DNA of 64,000 bases from Diadema antillarum. Its lineage: Eukaryota. Position numbers and translations under genes: made by a program. Below are positions 54,171 through 58,984 of this stretch, in pieces. The DNA lies in contig NW_027271855.1 in assembly GCF_040938485.1 (NCBI RefSeq), forward strand, positions 1,054,001-1,118,000. Direction: 5' to 3'. Positions within the stretch are counted from its first letter, which is position 1; every line of letters starts with the position of its first letter. The notes beneath the pieces are model-generated. The model was not told where the DNA came from and did not search any database. It saw only the letters and a program-made list of their open reading frames with translations.

Positions 54171-54585
54171 GTGGCAGTGTAAATTGTGTGTGAAAATGCA
54201 GTGTGTGTTCCTTTGCCTGGTTTATATCATCCCTGGCATCAACCTTCTCATCAGTTTAATGTCCATAGATACATGATCAATATGTGTGCAAAAAAAAAAA
54301 AAAAGTTGGAAATGTACAGCTGCTCCCTGCTGTAAGTATGTTGACATTGAATAAAACCTTGAGGTGCTAACATGGTCCACTGCACTATGGCTCTTTATTT
54401 TGACTGACGTATGCAGCATTATTCCACTGAATCAGAAATTACTGAGAATATGCATGGGTGTAAATTAAATGTTGCTTATCATGCAGTTTTAATATTACAC
54501 TTGTATGTTCAACTCTGAAATAAATCACATAATGGCCTTACTCAAATTTTGCTTGAGATGACTTTGCTTATCAGTGTGTTTAAAG

Positions 54586-54865
54586 TACAGTCAACCTTGC
54601 CCAAGTCGAATCTACAGTAAAACTTGCGTAAGTTGAGTAATCACCTAAAAGTCTAATTTTATCCAAGTCGAAGCTATTTCTTCAGTCCAAATAGATTCGA
54701 CTAAATAGGCAAGGTTGACTCTTTTTGGACTGAAGAAATAGCTTCAACTTAAGAGAAATTTCGACTTATGAGGGATTAAAATCAATAGAATATAAAGAGA
54801 AAAAGACCTTCAACTTAGGTGATTATTCAACTTATGCGAGATCGACTTAAGCAAGCTCGATTGTA
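54586..54865. mobile_element. pogo/Tigger-like MITE, internally rearranged
   Basis: TA|CAGTCAACCTTGCCCAAGTCGA…TCGACTTAAGCAAGCTCGATTG|TA with interleaved inverted repeats. Confidence 0.6.
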
Positions 54866-54960
54866 TCTGATTGGAATGTCACTATGAACAAGGGAGCTGT
54901 AATTGAGTGTATGATTGTTGTGTCGACTCTGTTTTATGTCCTATGGCTTTGAGACAGCGC

Positions 54961-55089
54961 AACACACACACACACACACACACACACATTCTGCAGCCTG
55001 CGCACATCTGACAAGCAGACAAAAACACAGAAAATATTTTTCTATGTATTTTAAAGAAGTCACTTACACTTCATTTTCCTTCTTTGTAC

Positions 55090-55129
<40 letters not shown>
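54961..55129. repeat. (CA)n at 54961-54988 and (CT)n at 55094-55129
   Basis: Visible directly. Confidence 0.9.
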
Positions 55130-55133
<4 letters not shown>

Positions 55134-55294
55134 CTTCTCATGCAAACTTACCATGTCTTAACTAGTGTTTTGGTTCATACTGTCAATGCATTGCTTAACT
55201 ATTTATCAGCTTCATTTAAAAAAAAGGCTAACTCTTGCAGTTTTGATAGGTATGATTACAAGGACAGCAGGCTTAGAGGAATGCATAAGAGAAA

Positions 55295-57886
55295 TATAAT
55301 CATTTTCTGAAAATTTTATTTAGTATAAAACAGCAACAAGTTGGTGTTCATAGGAACAACTGTACACAAGTAATTACATTGCTGAAAAGAAAAAGAAACT
55401 TTTGAACATATTAGTGGGATTGTCAGTCATGTCTGGACATACAGCATTGAGTAAATTGTACTTAAGGGCCTGACTTTTTACCAGACTGTAAGCCAAAAAC
55501 CATACGGTGCTTGTTTTATTTTCAAAGTTCACTCATTTGTTTTATTGGTTTATTAATCAGTTACACCCATTTATCACTGATCATGGATATTGAACAGGTT
55601 GAGTAATGTGTTGACAGGCATCCTTGTTATAACTCCAAAGTAAAATTTGAATTCTTTGTTGAAATATGTAACCTATGAAATCACACAAATTACATGTATA
55701 TGACATAAATCTACAGTTTTCTACATGTGCAAACTCTTAACTGCTCTCTATGTACACATGAAAACACTGTAAAAGGCACTTAAATATTTCTATAAAATAA
55801 ACCAACTTTATCATATTTACAAGTTGCTATGAAGGTACAAATATCACTTGGCATAAAATATTTAGTTAAGACACAATCTTAAATATCTAAAGGAATCTTA
55901 CCGCATGACAGAAAGACGGAATATTATCAATGATTTCTGAATAAATCTGAATACACAAACCACACTTTGCAGGAAGAGAATTGCCATTCCAAGGCACAGA
56001 ACAGGAAGCATCTACATTTGCCCATGTAAGGCAATCAAGGCTATTCACATCAAACAGTTTTCAAGAAAACCCTTTTGTTTCATCCATAGTTTGTAAATAT
56101 GTGATGACAGAACTGGAATGAAAACAAAAAGAGGCACAAGGAATGTTATTTCTGTTATTAATTCGATAAATAAACAATCAGTACATTTTGAAAAGAGATT
56201 AAAACTCTAAGGTGAAAATATTTGATAGAATTATGCCAATAAATATCCAAGAGGAACTCATTCCCATGAATTAAAGTTTGGGGGTTTACCTGCCTCACTT
56301 CCTCAGAACTAATCTTTAAAAAAAAGTTTTGCAAAGGGCTGAAGTGAATGATGATGAAAGGCACCAAGTACTGTCATAACTTGCGATGGCTAGTACTGAT
56401 CAACAGTTCTGTCATCTTCCCACCAATCAAATTGAATTCAAAGCATAAAACTGTAGACTTCCTTATGATACAGAGAGTGCGCCTTGAAATACATGCAGAT
56501 GAATGACATGTGTATTGCTGGGTATCCTGCAGCTCCTGAAATGGAACTCTTTTATGTACTTTTGTTAAACCATATTTTTTTTTTATAAGGCAATTGAGGG
56601 AAGAGAGAAAGAATAACTTCCTAAGGAAGTCAACTTCTTCCTCCTCCCCTTCTCTCTGTCTCTCCTCTCAGCTAACCCCTTTTTCAACCATCGTTCATGA
56701 ATGAGAAAGAGAAAGATAGAGAGAGAGAGGGTTGAATATCAACGCTGTGTGGTCTAATTTCGACAAATTACACAGCAGAGAGAAACACACTGAACTAAAA
56801 TCTTGATGACCTATTGCCCTTTGAAGCCAGGCTAATGTTTCCCAGCTGCCCATGTGAGAAATATAAAAACTGAATATTATTAATACTCTGCTCCAGCCCT
56901 CTGTATCTTGTCAACTTAAGTGACAAACACAGGCAGAGTACTTGCTTTCAAAGCCAGAAAGCTGCAGTACTGGGATGGTAAATACTGTATATACAGAGCT
57001 AGGCACTTAAAATAAAGGCAATAATATCAAGCTCCATCACTATTTTTGGAGGTAATTGTGAATTTTTGAGAATGCCCAACCCTGGGGTGTGGATGTTTCT
57101 CTTACTGTCTATCAAGAATCCCGACAACTGCTTCCATTGTCCTTTGTTTTTGTTCTTTTCACTTTTTTTTGGGGGGGGGGGACGGACGGTGGAAATTATG
57201 TTTTTAAGCCACTATGTACTTGGATTTGGTCACATTTCAAGTCAGTTTGAATACTGTACAATTTGGTCCAGTTTCTGTTTATAAAAAGAAAGCCACTCCA
57301 CCCTCTTGAACAGATGCTATGGGGCACAAAGTAGTCTCTGGAATGATTCATTGACATAACTTCTTGAAGATATTAACAAGTGTATTTGCATTTTACGACA
57401 GTACAAAACGTTTACAGGCACAAACTTTAATGGCAGCATTGCTGTATTTCTTACGTGTGGTCTTTATGGACACTTCAAAACACTTTAGAGTGAAAAATAT
57501 TGGAAAACATGTTTGATTAAACCAAGGATGAGTAAAATGCTACAAAGTTTCCCTTTCAGAGCATGATTAATTGCTTGTTTATGCTTGTAATGTAGTTTGA
57601 TTACTACAGTACTTTGATTTGTGAGGTTTTAATGGCTCACACTGAGATCAAATGCGTATATGTCTGAAATGCCAATCCACAGTTCTGTTGATGTTTAAGC
57701 CATTTACCTGCTGACATGTTGATCAGATGGCGCTAGCTTTAGGAGTTACATAAATCACACATCACTTCAGAACTGAACTATCTAAACTTGAGTATTTGCT
57801 CTGCACTCATCAAGTGCTGTTAAATCGTGAAAACACGGCTGTATTTTAAAGTGTTTGTGTTTATAGTCCAGTGGAGTTTAGTTCAT
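55295..57886 (-). other. SoxE: Putative SoxE 3'UTR (~2.6 kb)
   Basis: TE-free AU-rich sequence after the stop codon, dense in miRNA seed matches and Pumilio elements down to 55749. AATAAA candidates at 55549-55554, 55540-55545, 55515-55520 and 55315-55320. The 3' end is inferred. Confidence 0.5.
55315..55320 (-). terminator. Candidate polyadenylation signal AATAAA
   Basis: Plus-strand TTTATT, followed on the minus strand by U-rich sequence. One of several candidates. Confidence 0.3.
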
Positions 57887-58132
57887 TCAAGACCGCACTG
57901 CACTTGCATAAGCCTCCCATGGTCTGGGGTCTTGGAGCATTGTTGGTTCACTGAGATCTACATAAGCTGGAGACCGCTGGGGAGAAGTGTGGGGGTACTG
58001 GTAGGCAGGGGGCATGCCACTGGCAGGGGTGGAAGGGTTTGCATTGTAGAAGTCCATTTGTGCCCTGGGAGAATGTTGCTGCTGAGGGAAATCACATTGG
58101 GAGGCTTGTCGGAAGTCATATGGTTGTTGTTG
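57887..58132 (-). CDS. SoxE: Probable true SoxE C-terminus in a shifted frame ([81 protein letters not shown])
   Basis: 81 open codons ending in TGA at 57889-57887. The frame continues the polyQ and has the Pro/Gln/Ser/Tyr-rich composition and terminal W-E motif typical of SoxE transactivation tails. It needs one extra base between 58133 and 58132 (repaired protein 494 aa). Confidence 0.75.
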
Positions 58133-58984
58133 TGCTGCTGCTGCTGCTGCTGCTGCTGTTGCTGTTGTTGTTGCTGCACTTGTTGCATGGCAGCAAAGTT
58201 GAATGCCTGCATCTGATGGTGCTGTGTTGATGGATATTGTGGTGGTGGGGACATCATGTCTTGCTCAAGCTTTGAATTCACTGACACATTGTCCAGAATG
58301 GTTGCCTGCAAGGGGCTGGTATTACCACCAGTAGCCAGGGGCCTTCCAAGCCACTGCCCCCTTGCATTACCACTCTGTGTACTCACATTGATGTTGGCCA
58401 TGTCATAACTACTGTTGGTAGTAAAGGGAGGCATTTGGCAGGTCTGTCTGATCATACTCTGCTGACAAGGCATGGTGTGTGAAGCAGTCACGCTGGCAAT
58501 CGTTTGCACAATGTACTGGTCAAGTTCTTCAGAAGAAATCTCCTCCATTCCCATCATCTCACTGCCAAAGTCACGCACATCCACCCCAGCAAAGTCCATG
58601 GGCATCTCGGTCTTCACCTTCAGGGAGTACTTCTGCCGCTTTGTTGGACGAGTGCAGTCAGCATCATTCTTGGGTGTGGTTGGTGGAGTGGGTGGTCCCT
58701 GTCCAACTGCCCCTCCCATCATCATCCCCAGCTTGTCGGTTCTCTCCTTCAGACTGGCGTCTGTGATCTCCTCCCCAACCATGGTGCTGAGCAAGGCCTT
58801 GGTCGAGACCTGGTGGGAGGGGTCAGGCGAGGGGACTGGACGGTTGGGTGGAGCCTTTTTGTTATTGTCATTCTTGTTGCGGCGACGGGGCTGGTACTTG
58901 TAGTCTGGGTAGTCTTTCTTGTGCTGCTGCCTGAGACGCTCAGCCTCTTCAATGAATGGTTGTTTCTCTTTGTCAGACAACAGC
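57958..58984 (-). CDS. SoxE: SoxE coding exon 2 as assembled (rest of HMG box, [10 protein letters not shown]2/TAM-like region, polyQ). The frame after ~58133 is probably wrong
   Basis: Acceptor TTTTCTCCTGCAG|G completes the Arg codon, giving [37 protein letters not shown]. Also [16 protein letters not shown] (SUMO-type motif) and [30 protein letters not shown]. The spliced product as assembled is 470 aa. Confidence 0.9.
58124..58176 (-). repeat. CAG/CAA trinucleotide repeat encoding polyQ in SoxE
   Basis: Plus-strand (CTG)n/(TTG)n tract, visible directly. Confidence 0.95.

Follow-up and report, generated by a model that had tools for sequence, protein, structure and literature searches.

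A sea urchin SoxE 3' untranslated region as a predicted multi-site target of miR-124

The window analysed here, a 64-kb stretch of contig NW_027271855.1 from the sea urchin Diadema antillarum, carries on its minus strand a gene for a SoxE protein, the Sox8/9/10 orthologue, and the last exon of this gene is followed by about 2.6 kb that appear to form its 3' untranslated region (3'UTR). This stretch holds five canonical seed matches to the microRNA (miRNA) miR-124, and such matches recur in the SoxE 3' regions of other echinoderms far more often than their composition predicts. Judged from these sequence comparisons, the stretch after the SoxE stop codon is quite likely both a 3'UTR and a multi-site miR-124 target. 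As such, SoxE is a well-supported new candidate for a known kind of regulation.

The SoxE locus

The open reading frames (ORFs) on the minus strand assign the gene to the SoxE group. Specifically, the HMG box is split by an intron at the SoxE-type position, between LWR and LL, and a Sox_N-type dimerisation motif lies upstream of it. The intron after exon 1 spans about 2.9 kb, and the next exon begins with LLSDKEKQ at about 58995. The last exon has its top hits, at 78-80% identity, in SoxE of Lytechinus variegatus and Sox9 of Paracentrotus lividus. These two share 92% identity with each other, and both carry PF12444 and PF00505. The window species accordingly falls outside this pair, which fits the position of Diadematoida outside the Camarodonta, the group of Lytechinus and Paracentrotus. 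The principal features of the locus are the following:

62259 to about 61870, minus strand: SoxE exon 1 ORF, which starts MSSPESLE, contains the dimerisation motif and the first half of the HMG box, and ends ...GKLWR
57887-58995, minus strand: last coding exon of SoxE, from the second half of the HMG box to the C-terminus, delimited from the ORFs
57887-57889, minus strand: SoxE stop codon TGA, within TCTTGAA, which is invariant in the three-urchin alignment
55295-57886, minus strand: putative SoxE 3'UTR of about 2.6 kb, with conserved blocks, no long ORF and single-copy depth
55748-55821, minus strand: highly conserved block of 74 nucleotides (nt), nearly invariant in three urchins, with invariant runs of 22, 16 and 10 nt
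55315-55320, minus strand: conserved poly(A) signal AATAAA, after the invariant block TTGTTGCTGTTTT (55327-55339)

The SoxE frame shifts by 1 nt near 58060 (57887-58179), in or beside a polyglutamine/CAG tract, and the conserved SoxE C-terminus and the TGA, which match the ends of other echinoderm SoxE proteins, lie in the second frame. Related DNA contigs break exactly at the CAG repeat (58117-58183), so they cannot tell whether the frame break is an assembly error.

The extent of the 3'UTR was assessed in a three-way alignment of the window with L. variegatus (L001) and a third urchin from an ENA assembly (L003; protein 79% identical). Most of this alignment shows pairwise identities of roughly 35-60%, but 18 invariant blocks of 7-22 nt punctuate it between the stop codon and 55327. 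In all three urchins TTGTTGCTGTTTT is followed by AATAAA, at +2830 in Lytechinus and +2696 in L003, and conservation vanishes beyond this signal, which gives UTR lengths of about 2.6 kb in the window, 2.85 kb in Lytechinus and 2.7 kb in L003. Because conserved blocks continue up to a conserved AATAAA and are then lost, we infer that 55295-57886 is a 3'UTR that ends at about 55295 and contains every miR-124 site. A preliminary description of this DNA had placed the UTR as far as 55773 at least; the conserved blocks and the AATAAA bear this out and carry it further, since the most distal miR-124 site lies 478 nt from the putative end. An Rfam scan found no known RNA family in the UTR.

A cluster of miR-124 seed matches

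The miR-124 sequence is UAAGGCACGCGGUGAAUGCC, a string found in the literature on vertebrates, insects, mites and ascidians; its own gene lies outside this window. Given this sequence, GUGCCUU is a 7mer-m8 match, UGCCUUA a 7mer-A1, UGCCUU a 6mer and GUGCCU an offset 6mer. A site was called canonical if it showed a Watson-Crick match to miRNA nucleotides 2-7 together with either a match at position 8 or an A opposite position 1. All nine motifs listed in the preliminary description are present on the mRNA (minus) strand, 3' of the SoxE stop codon, and five of them, three 7mer-m8 and two 7mer-A1, are canonical:

56586-56592, minus strand: miR-124 7mer-A1 (UGCCUUA), local A+U 0.72, no aligned site in the other urchins
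56358-56364, minus strand: miR-124 7mer-m8 (GUGCCUU), lineage-specific
56027-56033, minus strand: miR-124 7mer-A1 (UGCCUUA), 36 nt upstream of the site at 55991-55997
55991-55997, minus strand: miR-124 7mer-m8 (GUGCCUU), strongest predicted duplex with miR-124, -18.8 kcal/mol
55773-55779, minus strand: miR-124 7mer-m8 (GUGCCUU), within the highly conserved 74-nt block
57015-57020, minus strand: marginal 6mer (UGCCUU), motif match
57416-57421, 57001-57006 and 56132-56137, minus strand: marginal offset 6mers (GUGCCU), motif matches

Over both strands of the whole window GTGCCTT occurs seven times and TGCCTTA five times, as shuffles predict, and the mRNA strand of the 2.6-kb stretch alone holds three of the former and two of the latter. 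When 55295-57886 was shuffled 20,000 times with dinucleotides preserved, canonical sites averaged 0.30 per shuffle and never exceeded 4, against the 5 observed; the computed expectation of about 0.15 per 7-mer is close to the rough figure of 0.1 in the preliminary description. Only 13 of 16,384 hypothetical 7-nt seeds reach at least five sites in this UTR, and all of these except miR-124 are simple repeats or strongly A/T-rich words. A repeat origin of the sites was considered and rejected: no repeat family was found, and the only similarity is one of 14 nt between the two 7mer-A1 sites. As the flanks of the five canonical sites are unrelated and the region is single copy, the sites are not copies of a repeat.

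Recurrence in echinoderm SoxE 3' regions

Since the hypothesis was raised on the window, the eight other echinoderm SoxE 3' regions constitute an independent test. Canonical sites were counted within the 2.7 kb that follow the SoxE stop codon (1.5 kb of UTR for L007), regions that outside the urchins are operational and not mapped UTRs:

Window sea urchin: 5 canonical sites
Lytechinus variegatus (L001): 3 canonical sites
Third urchin (L003): 2 canonical sites
Apostichopus japonicus (L006): 3 canonical sites
Second sea cucumber (L007), an mRNA-derived Logan contig with an intronless coding sequence: 2 canonical sites in the 3'UTR
Another echinoderm (L008): 1 canonical site
Asterias amurensis (L004): 1 canonical site
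Patiria miniata (L005): 0 canonical sites
Third sea star (L009): 0 canonical sites

A raw ranking of k-mers across species is dominated by A/T-rich words and was therefore replaced by composition-corrected tests. The nine regions together hold 17 canonical sites, where Markov models of order 1-2 predict 2.6 (P about 2e-9, rank 3-4 of 16,384 seeds), an order-3 model 4.9 (P 1.5e-5, rank 7) and 350 kb of non-UTR background from both strands of the same loci 1.5 (P 8e-13). With the window left out, 12 sites remain against 1.3 expected from the non-UTR background (P about 2e-8). The sites thus recur at about 7- to 11-fold enrichment over the nine 3' regions; they are strand-specific, with 17 on the sense and 3 on the antisense strand, and about 14 independent origins are left when aligned sites are counted once.

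The sites are abundant in sea urchins and sea cucumbers (Echinozoa). In the sea cucumbers, the proximal site is positionally conserved between L006 and L007, whose SoxE proteins are 69% identical, and the mRNA contig of L007 contains at least 1.5 kb of 3'UTR with two transcribed sites. The single Asterias site showed no alignment to the other two sea stars. Assembly ERZ26222911 holds both L003 (urchin-type) and L009 (sea-star-type, 86% identical to Asterias SoxE), so the sample is an echinoderm mixture.

Conservation of individual sites among sea urchins

Lytechinus has the site at 55773-55779 unchanged, and L003 has GTGCCTC in its place. A global alignment anchored between the invariant blocks TGTCATCACA and GTCTTTCTGT pairs the site at 55991-55997 with an orthologous Lytechinus site at +2176, the two sharing TGTGCCTTG; this position reads GTACCTA in L003, which has the 8-mer GTGCCTTA about 60 nt beyond the equivalent position, so that on the alignment this is a loss with a nearby gain. 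By alignment, two sites are therefore conserved in position across a deep split among sea urchins. The three remaining canonical sites of the window are lineage-specific, and one further site of its own is present in Lytechinus and two 8-mers in L003. The conservation check proposed in the preliminary description is supported by these two sites, by the one kept in position between the two sea cucumbers and by the enrichment over the nine regions.

The distal site lies in the 74-nt block, which also contains UGUAAAUA (55821-55814), the sequence UUUUAU, which resembles a cytoplasmic polyadenylation element (CPE), and UGUACAUA (55756-55749). The elements at 55821-55814 and 55756-55749 are both Pumilio-type UGUANAUA motifs, which over the nine echinoderm SoxE 3' regions number 22 on the sense and 7 on the antisense strand. 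Neither the sea star nor the sea cucumber loci contained the urchin block when up to 4 mismatches in 20 were allowed.

Proposed regulation of SoxE by miR-124

The data are best explained by conventional seed-type repression, in which Argonaute-loaded miR-124 would pair through nucleotides 2-8 with the five canonical sites, to which the four weaker 6-mers may add. Cooperative miRNA sites are reported at spacings of roughly 8-40 nt, and the two canonical sites 36 nt apart could act in this way. Binding would lead to deadenylation, decay and translational repression, and the SoxE mRNA would thereby be removed or silenced in the cells that express miR-124, namely neurons. We infer that miR-124 is expressed in this species and that its binding lowers SoxE output.

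The miRNA itself is documented in echinoderms: its mature sequence and precursor have been sequenced in A. japonicus (PMC4526669), and it is functional in Strongylocentrotus purpuratus, where Notch and NeuroD1 are validated targets (Konrad and Song, bioRxiv 10.1101/2021.12.10.471989). Embryonic SoxE expression in S. purpuratus covers the tip of the archenteron, the coelomic pouches and some of the myoblast precursors (PMC4175510), and juveniles express the gene in other tissues too, the nervous system included (PMC12588293). Most simply, miR-124 would keep SoxE out of differentiated neurons.

Weighing the alternatives

Several observations weigh against regulation by miR-124. Canonical pairing is lost in L003 at both positions that are conserved between the window and Lytechinus, and the distal site shares its block with Pumilio-like and CPE-like motifs, so that the conservation there cannot by itself be put down to miR-124. 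Few sites occur in sea stars, and the counts outside the urchins come from the operational regions noted above. Of the runs found to contain the stretch, none is on record as RNA. As embryonic SoxE is mesodermal, the role of miR-124 would be exclusion from neurons and not the neural-stem-cell switch of the mouse. Finally, the sea urchin miR-124 study (bioRxiv 10.1101/2021.12.10.471989) makes no mention of SoxE or Sox9, and a literature search found no miR-124/SoxE link for any invertebrate.

The alternative that survives best, itself unlikely, is that the motif is selected but has another reader, either an RNA-binding protein of UGCCUU-type specificity, of which we know none, or a Pumilio/CPE-type module in which GUGCCUU is a passenger. 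The embedding of the distal site in a block with two UGUANAUA motifs and UUUUAU fits this idea, as does the finding that the nine regions contain 29 TGCCTT cores, of which 12 neither follow G nor precede A, 11 of these being TGCCTTG, a word that is itself enriched. Yet the enriched words are precisely the two canonical seed-match extensions of miR-124, by a G at position 8 or an A opposite position 1, with 8-mers in two species, and the majority of sites fall outside the conserved block and show positional turnover at a steady count, as is typical of miRNA sites.

Somewhat less probable still is that the sites lie outside the relevant mRNAs, either because a proximal poly(A) site is used or because the conserved blocks are DNA enhancers downstream of a short UTR. 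Proximal poly(A) site use is possible, given ATTAAA motifs at 57633 and 57431, and the lack of an RNA-recorded run with the stretch for this species would agree with either version. For the enhancer version, the conserved heptamer GACCACA fits the Runx DNA consensus. Against a short UTR stand the end of conservation right after the conserved AATAAA and the sea cucumber mRNA contig, whose 3'UTR extends for 1.5 kb or more and includes sites; against enhancers, the strand asymmetry of both miR-124 sites (17 to 3) and GACCACA (12 to 0) argues for function at the RNA level and makes a DNA-level function unlikely. Three runs that align to the window each comprise about 830-930 Mb of contigs, with an even single-copy depth and pile-ups at repeats, and look like genomic DNA from a relative that differs from the window by about 5%; read as genomic, they say nothing on SoxE transcript ends.

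Least credible is chance, with a long A/T-rich UTR that happens to hold several copies of a heptamer matching a famous miRNA: both heptamers do occur window-wide at the shuffle-predicted frequency, and among 16,384 seeds about 0.3 would be expected to reach P about 1e-5 in a single UTR, so that this UTR taken singly is not extraordinary, but the 12 sites against 1.3 expected in independent species (P 2e-8), the composition-corrected ranks of 3-4 (order 1-2) and 7 (order 3) among 16,384, the strand specificity of 17 to 3 and the positional conservation in two clades leave a very small probability for this reading, which the independent species, on these counts, exclude.

Other motifs and neighbouring elements

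Further words are conserved or enriched in these 3' regions. Seed matches to miR-1 lie in invariant blocks at 56140-56146 and 57339-57345 on the minus strand, as ACAUUCC (7mer-m8) and CAUUCCA (7mer-A1). Over the nine species, miR-1-type sites number 14 on the sense and 6 on the antisense strand, with about 3.8 expected, and in each of the two sea cucumbers one of them adjoins the conserved miR-124 site. Matches of the miR-133 type (GGGACCA or GGACCAA) number 11 sense and 2 antisense in the nine regions, with about 1.4 expected for GGGACCA.

Two places on the minus strand, 57455-57462 and 56746-56754, carry the word GACCACAC(A) unchanged in all three urchins. GACCACA occurs 12 times in the sense and never in the antisense orientation, in 8 of the 9 echinoderm SoxE 3' regions, with about 1.5 expected; this strand bias points to a function at the RNA level, and we know of no miRNA whose seed matches it. 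GUAUUCA and UGUAUUC are also enriched in the nine regions (17 observed, 4-5 expected) and are conserved beside the sea cucumber miR-124 site (L006 about +385, L007 about +190). They match the seed of an echinoderm small RNA, ugaauacaucugcugguuu, which is probably miR-2002. This small RNA was sequenced in A. japonicus (PMC4526669).

Directly downstream of the putative poly(A) site lies a (GA)n microsatellite (55084-55138), where contigs of the related genome end. A high-copy element follows at 54582-54963, just downstream of SoxE, with a summed contig depth above 10,000 compared with 12-70 in its flanks and many joints between opposite strands. It contains a near-perfect hairpin (54665-54750), which gives sub-threshold Rfam matches to miRNA precursors on both strands, and it looks like an inverted-repeat transposon of the miniature inverted-repeat transposable element (MITE) type.

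Evolutionary origin and significance

The preliminary description suggested that the miR-124/SoxE link may predate chordates, which requires common descent rather than repeated gain. Common descent with the vertebrate miR-124/Sox9 pair is plausible from the distribution of sites, which are present in Echinozoa, lamprey, teleost and mammals. Specifically, the first 1.1 kb after the lamprey SoxE stop codon contain two canonical sites, on a strand that has no others in 15.6 kb. A further site lies in a sox9b-like mRNA contig from a fish, which is 72% identical to zebrafish and ranked above most vertebrate hits in the protein search. Against common descent, or neutral to it, are the nearly empty sea stars and the fact that no site can be aligned between phyla, and repeated gain is itself plausible, as miR-124 has very many targets. 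Among the 120 listed hits of a protein search seeded with sea star SoxE, there was no hemichordate or amphioxus sequence.

Tentatively, and with somewhat less than even confidence, the sequence patterns could reflect an ancestral deuterostome miR-124/SoxE pair, maintained for more than 500 million years through turnover of its sites, which may join a miR-1/miR-133 module on the same UTR. If such a module existed, SoxE would be cleared from neurons as well as muscle and confined to undifferentiated mesodermal or progenitor cells. This would be of interest for two reasons: very few miRNA-target pairs are known to be common to different phyla, and SoxE/Sox9 is key in debates on the origin of neural crest, glia and cartilage. 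The pair would then represent an ancient post-transcriptional circuit that is concrete and testable in an echinoderm, the more so as miR-124 reporters, target protectors and inhibitors are already in use in sea urchin laboratories. If the sites are instead convergent, they would indicate that long UTRs of non-neural regulators repeatedly gain miR-124 sites. In either case, the annotation gains a putative SoxE 3'UTR some 2.6 kb long, together with its conserved poly(A) signal and a highly conserved control block of 74 nt.

Comparison with known systems

The closest parallel is the repression of Sox9 by miR-124 in vertebrates, which the preliminary description took as known and which is indeed documented: two reviews name Sox9 as a miR-124 target in the mouse subventricular zone (PMC9120710, citing Cheng 2009) and in the mouse fetal ovary (PMC8945268, citing Real 2013). 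The mouse and urchin cases share the miRNA seed, an orthologous SoxE-group factor and sites in the 3'UTR, putative in the urchin, as well as a logic in which a progenitor or non-neuronal factor is kept off in miR-124-expressing cells. They differ in that the urchin case is a prediction, with five canonical sites whose positions cannot be aligned with vertebrate UTRs, and in that embryonic sea urchin SoxE is mesodermal (PMC4175510) and not a factor of neural stem cells or glia.

Within sea urchins, regulation of Notch and NeuroD1 offers a second parallel, with the same miRNA, the same animal class and seed-type sites, which in those targets were addressed with luciferase reporters and seed mutations. 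There, Notch has a single site in its 3'UTR and NeuroD1 a seed, deleted in the experiments, in its coding sequence, whereas SoxE would be regulated through a cluster of five sites in the 3'UTR.

A more general precedent is let-7 with lin-41/TRIM71, a deeply conserved miRNA-target pair that is backed by genetics in protostomes and deuterostomes. In comparison, the miR-124/SoxE pair is predicted from echinoderm and vertebrate site counts and is patchy within echinoderms. The likeness lies in the pattern: in both cases the miRNA is ancient, and its sites recur in the 3'UTR of the same regulator across phyla while the individual sites turn over.

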